Shown: in pieces, positions 20,701 through 55,200 of the stretch
How the letters are laid out: the number at the start of each line of letters is the position of its first letter
How positions within the stretch are numbered: position 1 is the first letter of the stretch
Origin: Orbicella franksi
Taxonomy: Eukaryota
DNA length: 64,000 nucleotides
Direction: 5' to 3'
NCBI GenBank assembly: GCA_964199315.1
Contig: OZ116703.1
Location: forward strand, 17,174,001 to 17,238,000
Notes under the pieces: model-generated
What the model was told of the DNA's origin: nothing
What the model saw: only the letters and a program-made list of their open reading frames with translations
Database searches by the model: none
Program-made: the position numbers and the translations under genes

Positions 20701-21023
20701 AGTTTTTATTATTTTTCTTTTCAATGCAAGAGTAAATTTAAGTACCAGTCTTTCTTTCTTTCGTCCCTTGTTTTTCTTCAGGTCGTACACCAGAGCAGCT
20801 GATTCCTTCTTTCGGACTGTTTCGCTTGTTCCACAGACTTAAAATCGCGGTAACCAGCGACCTGTTAGAAAAGATGGCGACGAACGAGAGACACGATGGC
20901 AAAAAGATTATTAAGGAGAAATCCCGGTCAACAGTCGGGACATCAAATGCGGCATTATCCTCGGACGAAACCTTGGAAAATCGTTTTTCACTTTTGTGTG
21001 ACATTGGAGAACAACAAAGCTAA
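17706..21023 (+). CDS. ASTE1: Protein asteroid homolog 1-like PIN nuclease, copy 1 (canonical C-terminus), 637 aa
   Basis: Exons 17706-18124, 18949-20201, 20782-21023 total 1914 nt in frame. Motifs MGIPGL, LVIDG, GGQYDEF, IFDGA, SEAD, NCPVLSSDSDF, AGND, FAQWQCVL; ends ENRFSLLCDIGEQQS. Confidence 0.93.
20353..20650. mobile_element. MITE-like repeat with internal ggcgggatgcgggat motifs
   Basis: Inverted ends aagagggcccaacttagg / cctatggtggcccctcat; repeated gggatgcggga motifs. Lies in intron 2 of ASTE1 copy 1. Confidence 0.5.
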
Positions 21024-25200: not shown

Positions 25201-26486
25201 TCAAATTTAAAATTGAAACAATAAGACAAAATTTTTTGATATGTGCTATCCATTGTTGTTAGGTCCCGCGAGGTTTTTCAAATTAACATAAATATTTCCT
25301 CTCTCATTCAGGTCGCATGCCAGAAGAGTTGCTTCCGTCTTACAACAATCGCTTTCTTTACAACGAAATTTGCAATGCGTTGGAGATAGAAGGTAGAATA
25401 AGAACGTTCTCAATTACAATTTACTTTTCGTTTTATAACTACTCTCATTGTTAATTTAACGTTGTTTAAAAAAATCGTTTTGAAGCGTTAACGATGTACA
25501 AACGTAACTTCATTATCATGTATTTTACAATTATCTAAAGAATACCTGCTTGAAAAGGAGACTGAAAAGCAATCAGTGTTTTAGCATGAGTTCACTGTCC
25601 GTGAAGAATGTCGGACGAGTGAAAACAATATGAATGGGATTGGGGCGAGAGGATGAACGGTGAACCCGAAGAGAACTCAATCTACTTAAAAAACTGATTA
25701 ACATTAATCGAAAACATGAGACAACACAGCGTAAGAAATTAGTTTAAAGTTGATAAGGTACAAAACTAAGCTATTGGATTGGCTTAATCTGACTTTGAGT
25801 AGCCACGAGTCCAAATTAGTAATCCATCTTTTGTTTTATTTTATCTTCCTTCCTGGTGATTATAGGCAAGATTAGCGTTGGCCTGAACACAAAATATCCT
25901 GGTGTCACACATCCAAAGTCGTACCAAACATGGGACAGTTGCCGTCCCCCGGCCCAATCTTACGCTCCCCTGGACATCAGGAGTGCTGTTTACAGGTACA
26001 AATATGTTCTTTTTATCTACCCCTTTCCCATCCCATTCCCCCCGTTTTCTTTTCTTTCTTTTTTTTTTCGTCCCCTTGACGATTATAAAGAATATTGAAT
26101 GCCTGTAAACAGACTATTTTTCCACAGACTACACGGGAAAAACTTTTATGATTTTATTAAATCTGATTACTTTATTAACAAGTTCCTAAGACAAGTTCCC
26201 CTCTTCAGTACATACAAAACGAGACGAACGAAGTAGAACACACCAAGTGGACAAAGTCTTGATGTACTGCCAAATTCTCAGAACTTCCTGTAAAGGAATT
26301 GCGTCGCAAACAGTTTAGAGAATTAATGTTGTAATAGCTCTTGCATGGCTGGTAAAAGACGCTAAATAGTGTCGAGTTCAAGTTGTAACTTCATTTAGGT
26401 GACAGCTCCATTTAATTTATTTTCAGTCCAGCAAAACGATGGGAAGCACATGGTCATACACGACAGACAAACCAGGTGTCTACGAG

Positions 26487-26519
<33 letters not shown>

Positions 26520-27564
26520 GCAGCAGCAGCAGTGGCTGTCTTCATCACAATATGTATGTAGTCAAATATCTTTGCAGGGTCAATCAATCAAGTCTATTAA
26601 TTTTATGCATCGCTGTTATGATGTAAGGAAACTGGTGTCTTTGACTTCGTAGAAAAAAAAAAACGATTTTTGAAAGCTCCCGCAGCTTCTCGACTAACCT
26701 CCGTGCCTCCAATAGTCGCTCTCCCTAAGCTTCCGGAATAAATTTGACTCAAGGCGCCATATCGAAACATCACGGTAAGACGTTTGCGACGTCGCCATTT
26801 CAACCGCAACTTTTACGAGCTTTAATTATTTCTCTTTCTTCCAGAAACAGAATGCGTCCCATAAGCGACATGACCGACCTATGTATTACTCTCCAGTTCC
26901 TCAAGGTGGAGCAAGTTGGAGCTTGCCCTTGTCCTCTAGTAAAGGGTATTACCAGGAACAACAGTATGCCCAACCCAGCGTCTATTCAAGTGGTCATCAC
27001 GCTGGTAAACCTCATCCAGTGACACCTACATCCAGTAGAGTAGCACAGCGCGCTTACACACAACAAAAAAGAGAAGCAGAAATCTCTACCGGGATTCAAA
27101 ACTTAAATCTACGTGCAAACCCGAGCCACAGCAGCAAGAATTACGCAGCAGGTGAGAACAGGCACTCGCCATCTGCGCTACGACCGAGGGAGGTATCGCC
27201 ACCGGGATGGGTGTCGCCTGGCTCCAAAAGTACGTCGGCAGCTTCTTACAATCCAGTTGATTATAGGAATGAAGGCAAAACACCACCGAATGCCAGACCC
27301 CCTCGCGCCAAGTCTACAGCACCGTACCCATCAGCTACCCACTGTTCCCTCTCCTCCACTCGGCGGAGGGATGAGCCAGTATCTTTATCTCCATTACGCA
27401 GTGGTTATGGTCAGCGGTTTTTCTATGATTCGTCTTCACTGGACGATTTACCACTCCCTTCTGATGAAAGTTGGTCAGTGAGGGATTCATCAAGGTCTTC
27501 CGATGAAAGCTGGTTATCCGACTATTACAATGATGACGCGGAGCCCTATTTTGAAGATTTTTGA
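22257..27564 (+). pseudogene. ASTE1: ASTE1 copy 2 with long disordered tail; one in-frame TAG at codon 97 (recent pseudogene, null allele or base error)
   Basis: Exons 22257-22681, 23554-24761, 25312-25392, 25866-25995, 26427-26553, 26845-27564 total 2691 nt. The only interruption is TAG at 22545-22547, and the frame continues (RIQAGDAL...LPLLSNLVFVQALRDRGVKFAV). IDG, LDG, EAD, NDSDF and GND motifs are intact. Confidence 0.8.
26488..26532 (+). repeat. Coding (CAA/CAG)15 polyglutamine tract
   Basis: caa cag cag cag caa caa caa cag x8, in frame in exon 5 of copy 2. Confidence 0.8.
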
Positions 27565-35100: not shown

Positions 35101-38100
35101 CAGGACAGAAGAAGAGGCGCTCGAGTCTGCTCTACTAATGGTAGAGTCAGTGGTAAGCAGAGATAAACTAAGACAAGCTGTCAAGCATTCTCTCCAGGAA
35201 TACAAGATCACAGAGTCACATTTGCTGCTCTATGTCGACAGTGGTGTGGTCGACAGCTCCTTGAAGACTCAAAATGGCCGTGAAATTGAAGGATGGATTT
35301 TGCCCAAGTTTCGCAAGGGACTGTTCTCCGCCAAATGTATGAACGCCTTGACAACGGGGAAACACTTTCTCAGAACTCAGGTTGAAAACTGTGAGGAAGT
35401 ATCGGCTAATCAGTGCTCTCAGCGCCTGAGGAAAGTCATGTATGGCATTTTAAACGATGCTGCAGCTCACGATGGGGAAGGAAATATAACGATGGTCCAA
35501 GAATGGGACAGAGAGGGCTTAGAGGTCAAGTCGTCAAATGTGCCACCCTACCAAGAGGGCGTAGTCCCTGGAGTGAGTCTCATTCCAAGCCTCAAGAAAG
35601 ATGAAAGATTAGAGGTTTTGTTAAATGCGCTTGATTCAAACACAGCTTCCATCAAGTCCTTGCCGGAGAAGTTTAAATTAATTGCAGCCTCACTTCGTTT
35701 TCTCGCAAGTAACGCACAGCCATCGTTGCAGGGGAATCACATCACCGCCATACTCTGCAGTTGTATTAAACTAGAAGACGGCTCGTGGAAACAATACATG
35801 AAAAGCACAATCAGTCAGTCGTTTGATCGGCAAGCAGCACAAAGCTTTGCTCAGTGGCAGTGTGTTTTGAGAGATGCTGTTCATCTGAACTTTGTTTTGC
35901 TTGAGCCTGTTGAAACACCGTGTATTCACAAAACGTTTAATGGACAACTGGCGCACTGTCTACAGAGCGGACTTGATCGAGGTGAGTCTTTTTCCGGATG
36001 AATGCTTGCTTGCTTCTTTTTCTCTATTTCGGAGGGGGGGGTGGGTTTCAGGGGGGGAGGGAGAAGGGGAGGGCTGAGTCACCTGGGGTTTATACCAACT
36101 ACGAACCCCATGCACCGTTGGCAATGCACTTTGTCACAATGTTTCCAGGAACTTGTTCTGTTTTTCTTTTGTTGTGTGAATGTCAAGAATTTATCTCTTC
36201 AGCCATTCCAGTGCCTAGAAACTTGAAACGAGCTATGTCAACAAGAAGCTATGTCAACCTCATGCCTAGGGCGATTTGCAGGGATAAACGTCCTGGAAAC
36301 GAGCTGGCTTCAAATCGGGGGCGACCATAAACTAAGAGGCTAACACTTAAGTGAAAGAAACTTAGATAACGATAAAACGAAAAAGGAACTAGGTTTATTG
36401 TGATTGATTGATTTTAAATTTAAAATTGAAACATTTAGACAAAATGTTTCGAAATGTGCCATCCACTGTTCTTAGGTCCCGCGAATTCTTCGAATTAACG
36501 TAATTATTGCCTATCTCTCTTTCAGGTCGCATGCCAGAAGTGTTGCTTCCCTCTTCCAACCTTCTTTACGGAGACATTTGCAATGCGTTAGAGAGAAAAG
36601 GTAGAATAAGATCGTTCTCAATTACATTTTACTTTTCGTTTTATGACTACTGTCATTGTTTCAACGTTGTTAAAAAATTCACTGTGAAGCGTTAATGAAG
36701 GAATTCCTGCTTTCTAGGGAAAAGTACGCTAAAAGGTAATCAATGTTTTAGCATGAGTTTGCTTTCCGTGAAGAATCTCGGATAAGTGAAAAAAATGTGA
36801 ATGGGATCGTGGCGAGAGGAGGAATGGAGAACGCGAACAGAACTCAATCTTCTTGAGAAACCGAATAACCTTAATCGAAAACATGAGAAAAAAAAGGCGA
36901 AAGAAATCATTTTAAAGTTGATAAGGTACTACTGGACTGGCTTAATCTTGCTTCAGTTAACCACGGACCGATCTACCTTTTGTTTTATTTTATCTTCCTT
37001 CCTGGTGATTATAGGCAAAATTAGTGTTGGCCTCAACACAAAATACCCTGGTGTCACACATCAGAAGTCGTACCAAACTAGGAATAGCTATCGCTCCTCG
37101 ACTCAGTCTTGCTCTTCCATGGACAGCAGGAGTGCGTTTTACAGGTAGAAATATTTTCTCTTTATCCACCCTGTTTCCCACATACCATCCCCGTTTTTTT
37201 GAATGTATTGAATGTCTGTCAACAGACTATTTTTTCGCAGACTACAAGGTCAAAAATTTATGATTCTATTAAATCTGAGTGCCTTATCAGTAACAAGTTG
37301 GCAAGAATGTCTTATTTCATTGTGTGTTCAACATTTAATTTCTCATAACCACTTCACTGCATACAAAACGATGCGGGAACGAAGTAGAACACGCCAAGTG
37401 GACCAAGTCTTGACATGGTACCAAAATCTCTGAACTTATTATAAAATAATTGTGTCGCCATCAGTGAAGAGAATTAATGCTTTACTAGCTCTGCCATGGC
37501 TGATAGACAAAGCCAAATGGTGTCGAGTTGTGACTTCAGGGTGAAGGTGACAGCTCTGGTTAATTTCATTTTAGTCCAACAAAACGAAGGGAAGAACATA
37601 GTCATACAAGACGGACAAAGCAGATGTCTACGAGGAAACAGCAGCAGCAGCAGCAGCGGCGGGTATCGTCATCACAATATGTACGTAGTCAAATATCTTC
37701 GCAGGGTCAATCAATCAATTCTATTAATTTTATGCATCGCTGTTATAATGTAACGAAAACCTGCCACTCAGCCGCTGGTGTCTTCGACCCCGTAGAAAAA
37801 ACATATTTTTGCAAACCCGCACAGCTTCTCGACTAACGTCCATGTCTCCAATAGTCTCTCTCTCTAATTTGACTCAATGCACCGTACCGAAACATCACGG
37901 TAAGACGTTTGCGACGTCGCCACTTCAACCGCAACTGTTACCAGCGTTAACAATTTCTCTTTCTTCCCGAAACAGAATGCGTCCCATAAACGACATGACC
38001 GACCTATGTATTACTCTCCACTTCCTCAAGGTGGAGCAAGTTGGAGCTTGCCCTTGTCCTCTAGTAAAGGGTATTACCAGGAACAACAGTATGCCCAACC

Positions 38101-38491
38101 CAGCGTCTATTCAAGTGGTCATCACGCTTGTAAACCTAAGCCAGTGACAACTAGATCCAGTAGGGTAGCACAGCGGGCTTACACACAACAAATAAGAGAA
38201 TATGAAATCTTTGCCGGGATTCAGAACTTAAATCTACGTGCAAACCCGAGCCACAGCAGCAAGAACTTCGCAGCAGGCGAGAACATGCTCTCGCGATCTT
38301 CGCTACGACCGAGGGAGGTATCGCCACCGGGATTGGTGTCGCCAGGCTCCAAAAGTGCATCAGCAGCTTCTTACAATCCAGTTGGCTATAAGAATGAAGG
38401 CAAAACACCACCGACTGCAAGACCTCGTCGGCCCAAGTCTAAAGCGTCTAAGCCATCAGCTAGCCACCATTCCCAGTCTTCCGCTCGGTGA
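32188..38491 (+). CDS. ASTE1: ASTE1 copy 3 (chimeric; disordered tail), 824 aa
   Basis: Exons 32188-32627, 34774-35981, 36526-36600, 37015-37144, 37575-37680, 37976-38491 total 2475 nt in frame. Catalytic motifs IDG, LDG, EAD, NDSDF and GND intact. Confidence 0.88.
32904..34325. mobile_element. TAGCCTGCGTAGCA-family MITE with nested insertions in intron 1 of copy 3
   Basis: Ends tagcctgcgtagcaaacgc / gcgtctgctatgcagag. A shorter version sits at the equivalent position in copy 4 intron 1 (about 42368-42560). Boundaries approximate. Confidence 0.55.
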
Positions 38492-41377: not shown

Positions 41378-41709
41378 CAATGCCCAAATATAGATGGCAA
41401 GATGAAAGTTAATGAAAAACTCAGCCACGTGGTACATATTCTCCAGAAACTGAAATCCGAAACTTGATCATTTTCTTTATTGGTAAAGGAAAATAAAAGA
41501 CGTATAATGCATGCGCAAGCCATATTTAATTAAGTTTCAGTAATGATGGATTATGTAAAGCTTTCAAAAACGCAAAAATACTTATGCATAAATAGAGCAA
41601 AAATAATGCTAGGGTGATTCTAAACCTTATGTGCCTGTGGAGGAGGTTTCGTGACGGTTACACAACGAGTACTTTGAAGTTGGAACATTTTGAGGACGAT
41701 TCTATCAAG

Positions 41710-44700
41710 ATGGGAGTTCGCGGGCTGACCAGCTACGTCAACTCAATCGAAACTCTCTGGAAACGTCAGACCAAGCTCAAAAACACAAAACTTATCATAG
41801 ACGGGTCCGGCTTATGTAACGATCTTTACAGGAACGCCTTCGACTGTCGACATGGAGGCCAGTACGAAGAGTTCCACAACGCTGTACTTTCGTTTTTCAA
41901 TGCGCTTGATTCTAATGGTGTAGAATCCTTTGTAGTCCTCGATGGTGCACAACATGCAAGCGGCAAAAAGTTAGAGACACACAAGAAAAGGGCAAATCAG
42001 AGGATCGAAACATCTTGTGCCTTAGCCGAGAATCGGGCACCAGAAAAGGGCGAAGACTTTCTACTTCCGGCTTTATCGAAGCTTGTGTTTCTGCAGGCGC
42101 TGATGGATCATAGCGTCAAATTCGCGGTCTGCGACAGGTAGGATGCAATATTACAGTATTAAATGTTAGCATAATAGTCGAATGGTTAGCTGACTTGGAG
42201 ACTGTTACCAGCGACTGGACATATCTCCTTCGTTGTATGGCGAGAATAAAATTTGCCGAGCGAACATAAAGGATGGTTACATCTTGTCGATGTCAGCTGT
42301 CAGCTCTCAGAATGAACTAAATAATCTACATTTCAATTGATTTCACCAATTTCAGAATATTAGAATATTAGACTGCGTAGCAAACGCTGGAGCAATAGGA
42401 AGCGAATTAGAGCGGCGTAAGAGTGAGAAAACGTTCGCGGGCGGAGGCACGTGAGGTGAAGGAACAGAAGGAAATGAGGTGCTTATTCCACTTGTCGCGT
42501 GCGTCTCCACGCGAACTCGCGCCTTTTCACGATCACTCGAGCGTCTGCTAAGCAGACTTCATTTTAATTCATGCTAGCGCAAACATTCTTGGTTCTCGAT
42601 CTTCCGACGAGGCATGACATTTCATTGAATAGAGGATAATGGATTGAGCAAATGCATTGGGTGACGTTAGTGATATTGTTTCAGTTTCCAGGCCTTTTAA
42701 TTCTTTTAAACCTGAAGGATTTATTTCAAATAAACAACTAGCGTAGCTTACCCAGGATGACTGTAGACGTGGCGAGAATTGTACCGTGATTTAGAAAATG
42801 GAAAGGAAGGAAGGGAAGTGGGGGAGCGACGAGGTCGTTACCTCTACTTTCTTCCTTGCCCCCGTGGGGGGACTCCCATATGAAAAGGTCGGGGATACTC
42901 GTCGGAAAATTTGAATTAAACCCCCGAAAAGAGTTTGGGCGTGGCTCGAGCTTTATTTGATCCCTTAAAGATACTACTTAAAACGAAATAGGCTTCCGCT
43001 CAGTAAAAAGGACTGGAGAGACCTTCAGAAACCGGGCTTAAAAACGGAAAGAAGAGCGTTTTTAATTATTATTTCTTTGAGTACGTCTCGTCATAAACAG
43101 AGACCAGAGACCAGAATCCTTGATTTATACCTCTAAAGGCTGGTTTTCACTAGCGACGGAGTCGGAGTCGGAGTCGTAGTCAGAGACGTAAGAGTGCTTA
43201 CGACCTAGTGAAAATCGAAAATCGGAGTCGTAAGCGGAGTCATAAGCTCGACGGAATCGGAGTCGGAAGAATCAGAACGTTTCCATTTCTTCCGATTCCG
43301 TTTACGACTCCGTCGCTTATGATCCAATGAAAACTAGATTGTCGGAGTCGGAACCAGAAGCGGAAGAACCAACCAATCACAAGGCCCAGAATGGATCATT
43401 GTAATTGGTTTATTCTTCCGCTACAGCTTCCGACTCCGACAATCTAGTTTTCACTGGATCGTAAGCGACGGAGTCATAAACGGAATGGTTGTTCTTCTTC
43501 CGACTCCGTCGGTTTGATTTTCACTAGTTCGTATCACTCTACGCTTCTGATTATGACTCCGACCACGACTCCGTCGCTAGTAAAAACCAGCCATGAGCGA
43601 GACGACGACCATCACTGACCTTTTCATATCAAAGTTTCCCCCCCTTCTCCCCCCCCCCCCCTCTCCCGGGGATGAATTTCATGACAAAAGGATACAGCTG
43701 CCTGGTTGCAACAAGCTTGTCTAAGTACATCTTTATGTTTCTTTCAGCGAAGCAGACAATGAAATCGCCTCCTTGGCCAGCGCTTGGAACTGCCCTGTTT
43801 TAGGCAATGACAGCGACTTCTTTATCTTTGATATAAAAGACGGCTACATCCCACTTTCTTCTTTCAACTGGAAGGCTGATGGGTTAACTGCCGACATTTT
43901 CTATCGAGAAGAACTGGCATCGCACTTTGGAATCCGCGCAGAATTTCTTCCTTTGTTCGCTTCTTTGGTGGGGAATGATTACGTCAGTTTCGAGGTATTG
44001 GCAGAGTTTAGACCCACACTGAATCGCGGAAAAGCGTCAAGATTTGCAAGCATTGCTAACATTCTATCGGACTCAAGGACAGAAGAAGAGGCGCTCGAGT
44101 CCGCGCTACGAATGGTAGGGTCAGCGGTAAGCAGAGATAAACTAAGACAAGCTGTCGACCATTCTCTCCAGGAATACAAGATCACAGAGTCAAATTTACT
44201 GCACTTTTTCGATAGTGGTGTGGTCGACAGCTCCTTGAGGACTCAAAATGGCCGTAAAATTGAAGAATGGATCTTGCTCAAGTTTCGCAAGGGACTGTTC
44301 TCCGCCAAATGTATGAACGCCTTGACAACGGGGAAAATCCTTCTCAGAACTCAGGTTGAAAACTGTGAGGAAGTATCGGCTAATCAGTGCTCTCAGCGCC
44401 TGAGGAAAGTCATGTATGGCATTTTAAACGATGCTGCAGCTCACGACGGGAGAGGAAATATAACGATGGTCCAAGAATGGGACAGAGAGGGCTTAGAGGT
44501 CAAGTCGTCAAATGTGCCACCCTACCAGGAGGGCGTGGTCGCTAGAGTGAGTCTCATTCCGCGCTTCGAGAAAGAAGTAAGATTAGAGATTTTGTTAAAT
44601 GCGCTTGATTTAAACACAGCTTGCATCAAGTCCTTGCCGGAGAAGTTTAAATTAATTGCAGCGTCACTACGTTTCCTCGTTAATAACGCTCAGCCAATGT

Positions 44701-45873
44701 TAAAGGTGAACCATCTCGTCTCTTTACTCTGCTGTTGTCTTATTTTGGAAGACGATTCCACTGAACATAAAGGAAACGCTGAGACCAGTACGTTTGATCT
44801 AGGAGCGGCACAAAGCTTTTCTCAGTGGCAGTGTGTTTTGAGGGACGCCATTGATCTTAACTTCATTTTGTGTGAGCCCTTAACTACACTGTGTGTTCAC
44901 AAGACGTTCAATGGAAAACTGGCTCATAGTCTGCAGGAAAAGTTAAATCAAGGTATATCTTTCCGGTACAAATGCGTACAGACAATTTGTTTTAAAATCT
45001 GACAAATATCGAGAGTGTCAAGGCTGTGTAGCTCTCTCTCCTAGTCATTTAATGCTAAAATCTTACTCCAGACCAAAAGGACTTGAAAGCCACATCCTTT
45101 GGCACCACGCACACCAATATAGCTTATATTAGGGCGTACCCTCTGGGGGTCCTAGAAATGGAACACACCAAGCTAACACAGTCGTGGGAAAAGGATTCCG
45201 GATATGGTTGGATTACCGTCTCCGAAAATTGACTCGGCTTGTAATTTTCGTCCAAGAAGCGTCAGCCAATTGGCCATTTCCGAGTTAGGTTGTGCCTCTG
45301 TTTCAAAATGAGTCCTCGTGCAAAGTCTTTCATATGAAGATGTATTTGATTTGCACGAAAGTGAACCTATAGCAGAATTGTTGTGCATCAAGTCTCATTT
45401 TGATATAGAGGCACAAGGGAACTCGGCAATGGCCTATTGCCATGTACTCGCTGACTGGTTGTTCTAGCATGAGGGAATTTTCACGGGGCGCAACTGTTTT
45501 CTACTTGCTGCTGTAATCGACTTTGCTTTAAGTAGGCTCTACTCTTTTCCTGGATGTTTCTTATCATCGGTTGTAGAGAATAAAACCTTCTCTTCTCTTC
45601 GCTTCTAGATTCAAATTATATAAACATCACTACATGCTATATTGAGAAACAGAATGAGAACTGTTTGCTTTACATCTTTCAGGTCGAACCCCAGAAGAGC
45701 TGCTTCCATCCTTTAGAAACCAGTTGTTTTACAAAGAACTTAACAACGCAGTAACTGATGGCTTACAGGCAAAGCTGATCAGTGATGAGGGGCAGAAAAG
45801 TTTCTGTATTTATTTTGTTGTCGTATTGCTAGTGGTATTTTGTTGCGTCGGATTCTCTCTTCTTCGAGTATGA
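41710..45873 (+). CDS. ASTE1: ASTE1 copy 4 with predicted C-terminal transmembrane anchor, 607 aa
   Basis: Exons 41710-42137, 43748-44952, 45683-45873 total 1824 nt in frame. Catalytic motifs intact. Last exon GRTPEELLPSFRNQLFYKELNNAVTDGLQAKLISDEGQKSFCIYFVVVLLVVFCCVGFSLLRV*. Confidence 0.88.
43138..43592. mobile_element. Harbinger-like MITE in intron 1 of copy 4
   Basis: TIR GGCTGGTTTTCACTAGCGACGGAGTCG / CGACTCCGTCGCTAGTAAAAACCAGCC; absent at the homologous position of copy 3 intron 1 (about 34630). Confidence 0.7.
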
Positions 45874-45914
45874 AAGAAATTACTGCCGTATATTTCCCCC
45901 ATTACGAACAACTT

Positions 45915-46193
45915 AGGCCCAGTGCACACTACAACACCTGAGGAATTTGAAATTACACGGGGGTTTCACTCTGAAAAATCATCAAATGTTTTCCATTCAC
46001 ACTACGCCGGAGAAATTTCAAAACGCAACAATAAACCAATCATTTTGGATTTGTGTTTGAGGAAAACTCGGTCAGCGAAATCACATTACTATCGTGATGT
46101 TATCGTTTTGGAAAAGCCCCGTTCTAGGTAGGCCTAGCCGTAGAAATAAAGTTGCGTTTTCAAATTGTTCCGGCGTGGTGTGGACGCTGCCTT
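45915..46193. mobile_element. MITE (ggcccagtgcacactac / gtggtgtggacgctgcc ends)
   Basis: Imperfect inverted termini with internal cacactacgccggagaaattt repeats. Confidence 0.5.
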
Positions 46194-46470
46194 GAAAGTA
46201 TTCCCGTCGCGTTTATATCCAAGCTTATATAGTTTGGTGTCGTTTGGTTATATCGGATTTTCTCTGCTACGAGCATGAATCTTTTCTAGTATGCATTTCA
46301 TTTCTCATGTCACGATTCGACAGAAAGTATTCCCGTCGCGTTTATGTCTAAGCTTACATAGTTTGGTGTCGTTTGGTTATATCGGAATTTCTCTGCTACG
46401 AGCATGAATCTTTTCTAGTATGTATTTCACTTCTCATGTCACGATTTAACGGAAAGGATTCCAGTTGCGT
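46194..46470. repeat. Tandem repeat, 129-bp unit, about 2.1 copies
   Basis: gaaagtattcccgtcgcg starts at 46194 and 46323; a degenerate third start is at 46452. Confidence 0.9.
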
Positions 46471-48073
46471 TATTTTGTTAGATCTTAGTTTTAAGTCGTT
46501 ATCAACGAAATAATCTGGGTGTAAGATCATAACTGTCCTTGAAAAACCACAAGGAATGACGAGTAAGGGGAAAAAAATATATTTAAATATATGTTTATTT
46601 GTTCGTTAGAATAAAGAAAATATAGCTATATACAAGAGTAATAGTAAGTCATTTTACACTGAATTTCATGGCTGTCTTCAGCAATTGATATATACTATTT
46701 ATGACATATAACAAGGCTCCTCTATGTATTCCAAAATGATTACATCAATTTCTAATTTTTCTCCAGAACTGGAAATTCAAATCGTAAAAAGCAATCTAAT
46801 TCATACGCTATTCTATCGTCAGATCGGTGAATATAATTTTCCTGCAACACTGAACCCTAATAAACAATCGACTCTTAATGCCGACATACAAGCAGCTAAG
46901 CCCTAAAACGGACAAAACCATCAGTGTTCCTAAGATAGTAAATGGAATTTACCTAAGAAGTCACAATTCTGCAAGGAAAATCAAAATTTAAATCGAATTT
47001 TGACCGCAAAACTTAAGGTTTCAGCAAAGAACTGAAACGTTACTTGTTTTAAGAAAATAAATATTCTATGATTCTTCGAGGCAGCAAGCTTCTTTAAAGA
47101 TCCCGCGGTTTTTCGTCAAAACGTTGCCAAGCAAAGCCATTCGTTGCTAAGGACCATGAATTATCGCCCTTGTCCTATTTTTCTGACTGGATAATATGTG
47201 GATGATTCTAAGAATTTAGCAAAAAAAGACACTTGCTGATGTGAAAGAATGGCAGGCTTAAAATAAATGCCCCATAAAAACGTTTCAAAGATTAAAAGTA
47301 ATACAAAATAAATATAATTGCCCCCAGTTAAGATATCTCGGAACCACTGAGATATTATAAAAAGTTCTATGAAAGACAAAAAAAACTTACACATAACTAG
47401 CGTACAAACTCTGCACGGGACAGTATATCATACCTAAAATTATTTGATATTTCTCTCCACTATTTGAATTGTGTTAAAAAATGTTCAAAACTTTACCTTG
47501 TAATCGTGAATTAAGCCTGCTCCAATTTCATTCCAATCTGCTTGAAAATGAGAATTACATTGAATACGCGATGCTGCAGTCGATCAATGACCTTTTGATT
47601 CCTGTGTGACATCTTTATGTTGGTTTTCCATTGCTAAGCCAATCAAAAGGTAAGTTAGTCAATGAAGGCAGGGTAAGCAAAGTAACCGCAAGCTACTGAC
47701 CGAAAAGTTTGGAAAACCAACAAAAAGTTGTCCGGAAGTTGTACTTGCAGATAACGATTCTTTGATTGGCTCGAAATTTTAGAAAACCAACACAAACATG
47801 CCAAAAGCCCTCAAAGGTGTGGCGCCTTTAGACGTAAATATGCAGGCTAAGCGGGGCAGAGGGGAGACTGGTCTTGTTTCATCTGATTCTCCTCTTTTCC
47901 TTTTAAGTCACGTGATAACGTCTTGACCAATAACACCATTGTGGTAAACATCGCCCAGTCATAAAGCATGTCCATTGCCATGTTTGCGTAGAGGTTACAG
48001 CTCGTTAACTTATTTCATCCAGGCGATCGTTACAGTTACTTTTACCGTGGTTTGATCCAATCCAACTCTCCAT

Positions 48074-52289: not shown

Positions 52290-55200
52290 TAGTATCACCA
52301 AACTAGTCGGACAGAAAAGGCAATAATAAAGTTAGCAAATGCAAGTTGAAGAAATATCTATTTGGGAATAACACGAAAGAAAGCATCACGCTCGATTGAG
52401 CCAATTTCGCTACTCGAGGACTATTACTAACAGTCTTCTAGTAGCGTAGCCAATTAAAATGCAGGATTCGCATTAGTCCACTAGTTGGGTGATACTAATT
52501 GGGGTTATCCAATTAGAGCGGTTCTCAATTGAGTGTCGTAAAACCAGAACCAAAGTAATCTCTCAAGCCAATCACAAAGAACACACAATACAGTGAGCCA
52601 ATCAAAACTCGAAGTACTCACATGTAGCTGACGCAAAGCGCGGGAAAACGCGTGCGAACGAGTCACGATTGGTTTTGGTTTTACTCCTGATTGGAAGAAA
52701 AATTGGCGCGAGTTCTTTTTAAACCAATCGCATAGCGTGGTAAGTGGAAAACCAATTACTTTTCAACACTCAAATGAAAACCGCTCTATATGGCTGGGCG
52801 AACTGGAAGAGAGGCACTGTGAGCGCAAAGCTAAGTTTGCCAAAAACAAACACAGTGACTCCGGCTGGGCCCGAACTCAGATCTGTCAAACCGGAATACA
52901 AAGCACTAACCATTAGGTTGTAGGTCAAACTATCATAGTTTCATTATTTTTTTTAAAAAAGACACTTACTGTCCACAGGAGACAAGGGTTTTGTCGGTGA
53001 CCTGTCTCCGGCGCTTTCCTCGCCCGAGCTCCTCTCTCTGTATCCAGCCGTGAAAGACGCGGACTTTCGGGGCTTGGGCGGCACTTTAGGGGGCGGGCCC
53101 TTCTTAAAGCTTTTAGGCTTGACCGGTGGTGGTGGGGCAGGTTTCTTGGGTCTCTGAAAGGTAGAGTCCGGCGAGGAGGTACGTATTCTATCGTTCTCCT
53201 CTGAAACCATGTCCTTCACGGCCATTCCGGGGCCATTGAAATCGATTTTAGTTTGATTAGAGTTGGCCACATGACGTGGCAGCTCAATATCCTCCAATGG
53301 AGGGGGAGGGCGGGGAGGAGGTTCGTCGTCTTCATTAGCTGAAGTTAAAACAGAATTATCTCCATGTAATCCTAACGAAGGGTCCAATTCATTTTCATGG
53401 TTGCCTTTTTCCTCCGGAGGGTCTAGCCGATTGGCAGAGGGATCAACCCCATCACCATCCGTCTGCGGCGCCTCAGGGCACAGATCATGTGGACCAGCAT
53501 TCTTCTGTTGATCTTGATCTCCGTTTTCATATGGTAATTCTTCTTTATGAACAAGCTGCGTTGTTGTCTCGGGAATTTCGGATTCCGCCGACGAAGAATC
53601 CTCGACAAAAAGCTCTTCATTAGCTTTTCCACTCGGGGAAAGAGCATTGCGAGAAAACTCCTTTTGGTTTTCTTGTGTTCGAGCGCTTTCCGAGATCAAT
53701 TCAGATGGTTCAACTTCATCGGTTGATACTCCGGAATCTTCTCCATCTAAACATGTCTCTAAATAACCCTTCCTCTCCTGAAGCGGAAATTTCTCTTCTA
53801 CACTTTCCAGCACGTTCTCATTTTCGTCTGCCTCTTTCAGAGCTTGCACGGCCATCCATATCTTTCTTTGATGGCCTGGTTTTTTGACTCCAATCGCTAC
53901 TAGGTCTTCTAACGTCATGTCCTGGAGGAAATCCATGTCATCGAATCCGCCGTCCAAGAACTCGGGTATGTATTGCTCTAGACCAATCAGACGCAGCCAC
54001 GTCATAATATCTCTCTGCAAGAGAAGCACCAGGTTTACCGTGAATTGGGATTGCGTGAACATGCACCAGTCGGACGTGACAACTGAACGTAACGCTTCCG
54101 TTCTTTCTTATGCCGTGGGTAAATAAGCCAAGCTTGCAAGATTTTTCAGCTAGTATAAATTGCATTTGCTCTGAAAATCTGTGACAGCTGGCCAGTGCGT
54201 ACCCGAGGCAAAGCTGAGTGAAATACTTTATGACATTTTTTCGAAATAAAAACAAAATTCAAATTTAGGACTGCATGGAAAGACCTCATACTTCCAACAC
54301 ATCACATAAGGGAATTTGAAACGTCTGTAAGTTTTGTGATAGTGCTTTACATTCCTGACAATATCCAACTATTCATGTACAAACTGCTATTACAGCTCAC
54401 CGGTTTTTCTCTCGGAAATACCACTCTACTTTCCAGTTTGGCTGATTCTGATAGAATCTTTTTCCTATGACCTGTTTTCGTCACGTTTATGGCCGTCAAA
54501 TCCTGACAAAATGCAAAGATAACAAACAAACAAAAATTACAGCAACAACCAAGCAAGTAAGCAAGCAAGTTTAAGAGTTGGTTTCCCAAAATATACGTTA
54601 TTCTCTGTATTCGTGTAACCTGCCATTCAACGTGAATAACTATCAATACGTTGAGCCCAAATTTTCCTTCACCGTCCATGTTAAGCCGCTCACAACATAA
54701 AATATTCAGTACGCCGAATTTATAGTTCTCCTACATTTTTTATGAAGACCTAAACAAAAACGCCCATGGCACACTAAAACAGGAATCTCTCACGTAATTT
54801 TGATTTCATCACTTTGTACCGAACAGTTAAGACCACATGGTTAAAAAAACAGTAAATACTACGTTTAAATACACATGACTTCCGGTTCGTCAGGCCTGTG
54901 GCTTTAAGTCTCCCATTCCAAAAATATGAAGGACTCGTTGTCAGATATAACCCTTCTGGGGGGGGGGGGGGGGGGGGGCACTAATGAATATAGCTCGAGT
55001 CCTAAAAGTCCTTTCTCAATCACACACCTCCTAACTTACGTAGTTAGAGACGAAAAGGCAAAATGACAGTATCACCCTATTTTAAACAGATCTTGCTCTA
55101 CAACAAGCGCAACAGTACGCCGTAAAGTTCGGAAAATGACGATCCTTTTGGATTCATACTAGTAGCCTGTCGCTATCGCTACTTTCCGATGATCGAAACT

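Follow-up and report, generated by a model that had tools for sequence, protein, structure and literature searches.

ASTE1 is known as a soluble nuclease of the nucleus, where it acts downstream of 53BP1 and shieldin to trim DNA ends. Nucleases held at membranes are known from mitochondria, where PNLDC1, Zucchini/PLD6 and EXD2 are each anchored by one terminal helix, and to our knowledge no nuclease of the XPG/FEN1 superfamily carries a membrane anchor. At the ER, TREX1 is a tail-anchored DNase (PMC11904002). PMC9879193, citing Zhao et al. 2021, presents ASTE1 as an XPG-related structure-specific endonuclease that is recruited by shieldin, trims 3' overhangs and is nuclear. The literature searched held no membrane-anchored XPG/FEN1-superfamily nuclease, and no paper linking ASTE1 with a tail anchor or with corals. 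A preliminary description of the present DNA had proposed a membrane-anchored ASTE1 as an unfamiliar architecture, and the literature on ASTE1, in which no tail-anchor paper was found, agrees with this. The protein itself is already modelled in RefSeq; a description of its tail was not found in the literature.

Four tandem ASTE1-like genes lie on the + strand of the 64-kb window (the whole stretch of DNA that was analysed). The fourth, copy 4, is in our assessment probably an expressed, selectively maintained ASTE1 paralogue in which a hydrophilic C-terminus has been replaced by a single transmembrane (TM) helix, predicted to serve as a tail anchor in the ER or nuclear envelope. Copy 4 resembles ASTE1 in its MGVRGL start, its XPG_N, XPG_I_2 and Asteroid_N regions, its acidic motifs, its length and exon layout, and its homology from end to end; unlike ASTE1 as described, a soluble nuclear DNA-repair factor, it carries a transmembrane-like C-terminal helix. 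In its predicted topology it would be like TREX1 (PMC11904002), whose N-terminal DNA nuclease faces the cytosol and is followed by one membrane helix at the C-terminus and a very short luminal end. The two enzymes have unrelated folds, a DEDDh exonuclease in TREX1 and an XPG/FEN1-like PIN fold in copy 4, and no sequence homology. The linker of TREX1 is long and flexible, whereas the spacer of copy 4, judged from a structural model, would be ~12-15 residues. Any resemblance would be one of functional analogy only. PNLDC1, Zucchini/PLD6 and EXD2 differ from copy 4 in fold, some of them are N-terminally anchored, and their anchors are generally less hydrophobic.

The coding sequence of copy 4 joins 41710-42137, 43748-44952 and 45683-45873 into 1824 nt, an uninterrupted frame of 607 codons, and its splice sites are canonical. 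Exon 1 (41710..42137, + strand, as for all features below unless stated) starts with MGVRGL and comprises the XPG_N-like part with the acidic motifs IIDGSG and VLDGA, ending at the donor CAG/GTAGGA. Exon 2 (43748..44952) follows the acceptor tttcag/C, encodes the acidic motifs SEADNE and NDSDFF (XPG_I_2) and the Asteroid body, and ends at the donor AAG/GTATAT. Intron 2 (44953..45682) is a GT-AG intron of 730 nt that closes with a strong acceptor at 45682 (gtttgctttacatctttcag/GT), and the frame read from 45685 opens with RTPEELLPSF, the conserved start of the ASTE1 last exon. The soluble part of the last exon (45683..45798) encodes the conserved YKEL.NAVTDGL helix, followed by a short spacer of charged character that closes with DEGQK. 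Next come the 22 uncharged hydrophobic codons of the candidate transmembrane tail anchor (45799..45864), then Arg-Val, a putative two-residue luminal end, and a TGA stop (45865..45873, with TGA at 45871-45873). The reading of 21 hydrophobic residues followed by Arg-Val in the exon at 45683-45873, first made in the preliminary description, is confirmed in its coordinates and belongs to an intact gene. It had also been said that the six-frame open reading frame (ORF) track does not show the tail, which is incorrect: the plain ORF list includes the stretch, at 45724-45873, as 49 aa.

For the ORF that contains exon 2 (43773-45002), identity to 'protein asteroid homolog 1-like [Orbicella faveolata]' reaches 99% (E = 2.5e-261), and the exon-2 product has further matches in Stylophora, Porites and Oculina ASTE1-like proteins. 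The O. faveolata RefSeq models XP_020624173.1 (634 aa) and XP_020624181.1 (partial) have a tail identical to that of copy 4. An orthologue of 616 aa from Oculina patagonica has been annotated both by RefSeq (XP_078347187.1) and by the submitter (KAL9956447.1). XP_020624173.1 begins 27 codons 5' of MGVRGL (window 41629-41709), placing MGVRGL at RefSeq residue 28. Because the Pfam XPG_N profile begins at MGVRGL and the Oculina protein is without the extension, 41710 is the likelier start codon, and the 27-residue N-terminal extension of the RefSeq model is probably wrong.

Transcript evidence comes from one assembled contig, JGI Ga0099804_1119053 (sample 3300008044; hereafter L006), which matches the window at 43440-44954 and then at 45681-46274. 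Intron 2 is removed exactly at 44952/45683, with the junction reading AAATCAAG joined directly to GTCGAACC, and because a GT-AG intron has been removed this precisely, L006 is taken to be RNA-derived. It is identical to the window at 191/191 positions across the exon-3 coding sequence, and it continues unspliced through the tail, the stop and ~400 nt of 3' UTR (45874..46274; L006 1535-2128 against window 45681-46274, at 98.8%). Splicing out of the exon ahead of the hydrophobic stretch, which had been named as an outcome that would undo the proposal, is not seen in this contig, where the alternative donors at 45768 and 45834 are unused. The identity of L006 is 97-99% to copy 4 but only 89% to copy 3. 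Two oddities were noted in the same contig: positions 1-356 still carry the final 300 nt of intron 1 (window 43440-43747), and at the other end ~100 nt (2129-2234) have no counterpart in the window. These could stem from incomplete splicing, from a chimeric assembly or from an internal start.

By family and domain content, copy 4 is a member of the ASTE1/Asteroid family within the XPG/FEN1 superfamily, and so a putative nuclease. A Pfam search with the O. faveolata protein gave PF12813 XPG_I_2 at 42.5 bits (cut-off 24.2) and PF00752 XPG_N at 23 bits (cut-off 22), and PF27698 Asteroid_N is precomputed for the exon-2 product of copy 4 and its relatives. Copy 4 and Oculina both retain the four acidic motifs (IIDGSG, VLDGA, SEADNE and NDSDFF), the last three of which align with catalytic core motifs of EXO1. 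The nuclease body is under purifying selection, with dN/dS ~0.3: against five other loci (dS 0.17-0.73), exon 1 of copy 4 gives values of 0.16-0.39 and exon 2 gives 0.31-0.34. For the soluble part of the last exon, pairs involving the window copy give 0.16-0.56.

In frame, exon 3 ends in DEGQKS, continuing from that Ser as S-FCIYFVVVLLVVFCCVGFSLL (45799-45864), then RV and TGA. The tail comprises 21 hydrophobic residues, or 22 uncharged residues counting the leading Ser, and occupies residues 584-605 of 607. Kyte-Doolittle hydropathy averaged over 19 residues (KD19) peaks at 2.94 within residues 584-605, and this is the sole membrane-like segment in the protein, as every KD19 window above 1.6 starts at residues 580-589; hydropathy over all 607 residues revealed no signal peptide and no second membrane segment, and the protein opens directly with the catalytic XPG_N region. 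A 607-residue model with a single TM helix at about residues 585-605 had been anticipated, and both the codon count and the one KD19 helix at 584-605 match that expectation. Support for a TM helix is drawn from hydropathy, from run length and from a mediocre AF2 model; a Hessa-scale estimate for copy 4 is indicative only. The AF2 model has a mean pLDDT of 65.7, and shows a helix at 555-569 packing with the body (pLDDT ~89) and then a single long helix at 573-606, with pLDDT 58-79 in the tail. Alternative modes of C-terminal attachment were considered and rejected: a GPI-anchor signal, since copy 4 lacks a signal peptide; CaaX prenylation, since position -4 is not Cys; and a hairpin or lipid-droplet anchor, since the hydrophobic stretch is too short. 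Across all six frames of the window, 128,000 codons in total, uncharged runs of 20 residues or more with a mean Kyte-Doolittle value of at least 2.5 occur six times, two of them as simple repeats, and the chance of one such run in a given 63-codon exon is ~0.3%. As a run of this kind is rare yet possible by chance, the case for the tail rests on its transcript and its conservation.

Loci for comparison were gathered by fetching the DNA around exon-2 homologues and around matches to the tail exon. This gave nine tail exons from eight loci: the window, Oculina (L001), three large ENA coral contigs (L002-L004), L005 with two, an ENA metagenome scaffold (L007) and a Tara scaffold (L011). All nine have the acceptor tttcag/GT, an invariant helix of the YKEL.NAVTDGL type, and an LLVVFC core with an invariant Cys. 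The lack of a conserved hydrophobic tail in related species had been named as an outcome that would undo the proposal, and such a tail is now seen in these last exons, that of Oculina patagonica included. In seven scored exons the uncharged stretch is 22-24 residues long with KD19 of 2.9-3.4, and L007 has 17 uncharged residues followed by Arg. Between the hydrophobic stretch and the stop there are 2-14 residues (scored exons, with L007 and L011 judged by reading). The stop lies where it does in copy 4 in L001, L002, L003, L005b and L007, and the two-residue end is not universal, as L004, L005a and L011 run ~9-14 residues beyond the helix. Relative to copy 4, the tail gains 11-14 residues in L004 and L005a and is likewise extended in L011. 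The Oculina protein is collinear with copy 4, with 68% identity over 617 alignment columns and a tail that differs yet is homologous; at the DNA level, the last exons of the two are 73% identical from acceptor to stop, and the alignment ends at the stop. One Orbicella-like genomic ORF, P0125, has TGG in place of the stop after LLRV and reads ~160 residues through the 3' UTR; it may come from a sister species, be allelic, or result from a sequencing error.

The tail exon occurs twice in L005, once in each of two neighbouring paralogues (L005a and L005b), of which L005b is a different paralogue. Exon 2 of L005a (L005 10001-11277) is broken up into two ORFs that overlap but differ in frame. A frameshift would explain this, and would suggest that the gene is a pseudogene in that species, as would an error in the assembly of long reads. 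In a FastTree phylogeny of exon-2 proteins (MAFFT alignment), a single clade with support of 0.98 unites the copy-4 and Oculina groups, and the second L005 paralogue joins it with weak support. At least two other coral assemblies have two copy-4-type exon-2 genes on one contig (P0006/P0012 and P0011/P0015), and because these genes share contigs, the TM-type paralogue itself appears to have been duplicated in some species. The TM-tailed copy is the last of the ASTE1 array in the window and in L001-L003, where a minus-strand SAM-domain gene adjoins it. An exon of this gene lies at 52953-54062 (-) in the window, and a SAM or ankyrin-SAM gene holds the same place in Oculina (L001), L002 and L003; we read this position as conserved synteny marking the end of the ASTE1 array. 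A search of the C-terminal region alone against a set of 5.8 billion proteins returned only the queries themselves, and a tail-exon alignment profile run against 1.84 billion representative proteins gave five matches only; as short last exons are seldom called as proteins, such searches cannot set the taxonomic range of the tail. No hydrophobic tail was seen in the annotated Stylophora and Porites proteins.

Other members of the family end differently. Window copy 1, L010, P0040 and P0100 are hydrophilic-tailed paralogues with a basic stretch, an (N/S)RF-x-x-L motif and, in most of them, an acidic end, a module that copy 4 and its orthologues are without. The hydrophilic module (window 20784-21023; L010 5986-6231) retains its basic stretch, NRFS(L/A)L and acidic end across distant corals, and perhaps serves to bind a partner or to bring about nuclear import. 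The corresponding exon of copies 2 and 3 (25314-25382 and 36528-36590, respectively) loses similarity after NALE(I/R)(E/K)G, and long Ser/Pro/Tyr-rich ORFs lie downstream (26881-27564 and 38006-38491). As read from these predicted products, the array is one enzyme body with three C-terminal modules: hydrophilic with the basic/RFSLL elements, long and disordered, and, in copy 4, transmembrane. The proposal is that an ancestral hydrophilic C-terminus would have given way to the helix in copy 4. The preliminary description went further, deriving the FSLL of the tail from the NRFSLL of copy 1 by replacement in place, and this part has no support in the DNA: 11/30 bases match around the motif, and local alignments to copies 1-3 are no better than those of shuffled sequences. 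A MAFFT pairing of NRFS-LL-C in the hydrophilic tails with KSFC..LL..C in the TM tails was likewise set aside as a convenience of alignment.

The conserved helix might not span a membrane at all, and might instead mediate oligomerisation or partner binding, or act as a quality-control degron that keeps the protein low. An invariant Cys and LLVVFC core exceed the needs of a generic anchor, the AF2 confidence is moderate, and membrane localisation is itself predicted, all of which would suit such a role. However, a helix of 22-24 residues that lacks any charged or strongly polar side chain, and in which I, L, V and F replace one another freely at most of the remaining positions, is the signature of a lipid-exposed segment rather than of a specific protein interface, and the hydrophilic-tailed paralogues show that the fold needs no C-terminal hydrophobic element. 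We regard a non-membrane role as unlikely.

For a tail anchor, the arrangement at the C-terminus is the usual one: tail-anchored proteins have a hydrophobic helix of ~20 residues at the extreme C-terminus with a luminal end of fewer than ~30 residues, and copy 4 has such a helix with two residues after it, while the orthologue tails have 17-24 uncharged residues followed by 2-14 more. With no signal peptide and a helix lying at the very C-terminus, insertion could occur only after translation. This would leave the 580-residue nuclease on the cytosolic side, or on the nucleoplasmic side should the protein reach the inner nuclear membrane, ~12-15 residues away from the bilayer and with two residues in the lumen. 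By general sorting rules the predicted destination is the ER and nuclear envelope, via the GET/TRC40 route, since the 22-residue helix is very hydrophobic and its C-terminal flank is not consistently basic. Tail-anchored proteins whose C-terminal flank is basic tend to be sorted to mitochondria or peroxisomes, and an anchor in the mitochondrial outer membrane or in peroxisomes could be argued from the very short luminal end and from an Arg that often directly follows the helix (RV, RM, RA, RK, RE). We nonetheless hold such a destination to be quite unlikely, as a helix of 22-24 residues with KD19 of 2.9-3.4 is typical of an ER client of GET3/TRC40, whereas mitochondrial anchors are shorter and moderately hydrophobic, and as the charge of the flank is not conserved: Oculina ends in QE, and L005a and L011 are acidic or polar after the helix.

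Constraint on the tail was argued from a conserved property, using codon-position counts and a drift simulation rather than classic codon tests. Tail dN/dS is ~1 in distant pairs, a noisy figure over 22 codons, and is expected if hydrophobicity alone matters; of the dN/dS test put forward for this gene, the part concerning the body (~0.3) came out in favour of constraint, whereas the tail gave no sign of constraint at the codon level. The T content of the tail-coding stretch of copy 4 is 55%, with T at codon position 2 in 15/22 codons. Across all species T occupies codon position 2 in 15-18 of the 22 tail codons, and most changes fall at position 1, giving I/L/V/F swaps. Indels in the tail exon preserve the reading frame, in contrast to the many gaps of the intron and UTR on either side. 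Under neutral drift simulated at the observed divergence, a run of at least 20 uncharged residues survives in 1.4-8% of cases per distant lineage and in 22-33% per near lineage, giving a joint survival of order 1e-4 for the uncharged runs, with indels not yet counted. Neutral drift is thus an unlikely account of the kept hydrophobicity, frame and LLVVFC core together. Another account makes copy 4 a young duplicate in decay whose tail merely reads on, to no function, into T-rich non-coding DNA, with the conservation owed to recent ancestry or to nucleotide constraint on the 3' UTR. It could draw on the base composition of the stretch and the ease with which T-rich DNA gives membrane-like peptides (PMC7005711), on a 3' end of the tail that resembles a 3' UTR tandem repeat, on the tail dN/dS and on a tail identity of 84-93% among close relatives that only slightly exceeds the 82-88% of the intron, but is very improbable given that the frame and uncharged run survive at synonymous distances of up to ~0.4-0.7 and in two paralogue lineages, that joint survival under drift has the low odds above, that purifying selection acts on the remainder of the gene, where the catalytic motifs are intact, and that the transcript is spliced.

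With an ER/nuclear-envelope tail anchor as the preferred reading, candidate substrates for the putative nuclease would be cytosolic DNA, DNA at the nuclear periphery, or RNA. A conserved, expressed, tail-anchored ASTE1 paralogue would show that the XPG/FEN1 class can be redeployed to a membrane surface, with a bearing on innate DNA sensing, viral defence and intracellular symbiont life, and copy 4 would be a coral candidate for a counterpart of the membrane-bound nucleases that clear DNA. By analogy with the unrelated mammalian TREX1 one may speculate, as a tentative idea that we hold to be unlikely, that robust stony corals have made a nuclear repair nuclease into an ER/nuclear-envelope counterpart of TREX1, with an anchor taken from T-rich 3' repeat DNA. 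Were the TREX1-like reading true, the enzyme would degrade stray DNA in the cytosol or at the envelope, whether self, viral or from symbionts, and so set the threshold of cGAS-STING-type sensing.

The array also offers a natural experiment, in which one body has been given three alternative C-termini, the newest maybe from T-rich non-coding DNA. Such DNA readily encodes membrane-like peptides, and membrane domains can be born in this way (PMC7005711). Copy 4 is like those cases in that its tail is T-rich, has no detectable homologue in copies 1-3 and, at its 3' end, matches a 3' UTR repeat; it is unlike them in that they are new genes, whereas here an old gene gained the segment as a module at its C-terminus. 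Local alignment of the TM-coding stretch with the tail of copy 1, and with the post-donor sequence and 3' flanks of copies 2 and 3, was no better than with shuffled sequences. Within the 3' UTR, TRF found a 129-nt tandem unit in 2.2 copies (46194..46471), which also lies downstream of the orthologous exon in L001-L005. This unit partly resembles the last nine tail codons plus the stop (45847-45873), with 23/27 bases matching and 0/2000 shuffles reaching the score. The match fits recruitment of the tail from T-rich non-coding DNA, and a duplication linking tail and repeat could have run in either direction. A dispersed transposon was rejected as the source, as the 3' UTR sequence matches local and orthologous positions only. 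The 3' UTR additionally contains an inverted repeat of 32 nt at 87.5% identity (45998-46029 and 46151-46182), in a region whose orthologues align in L002-L004, and its two arms may be the ends of a small inserted element.
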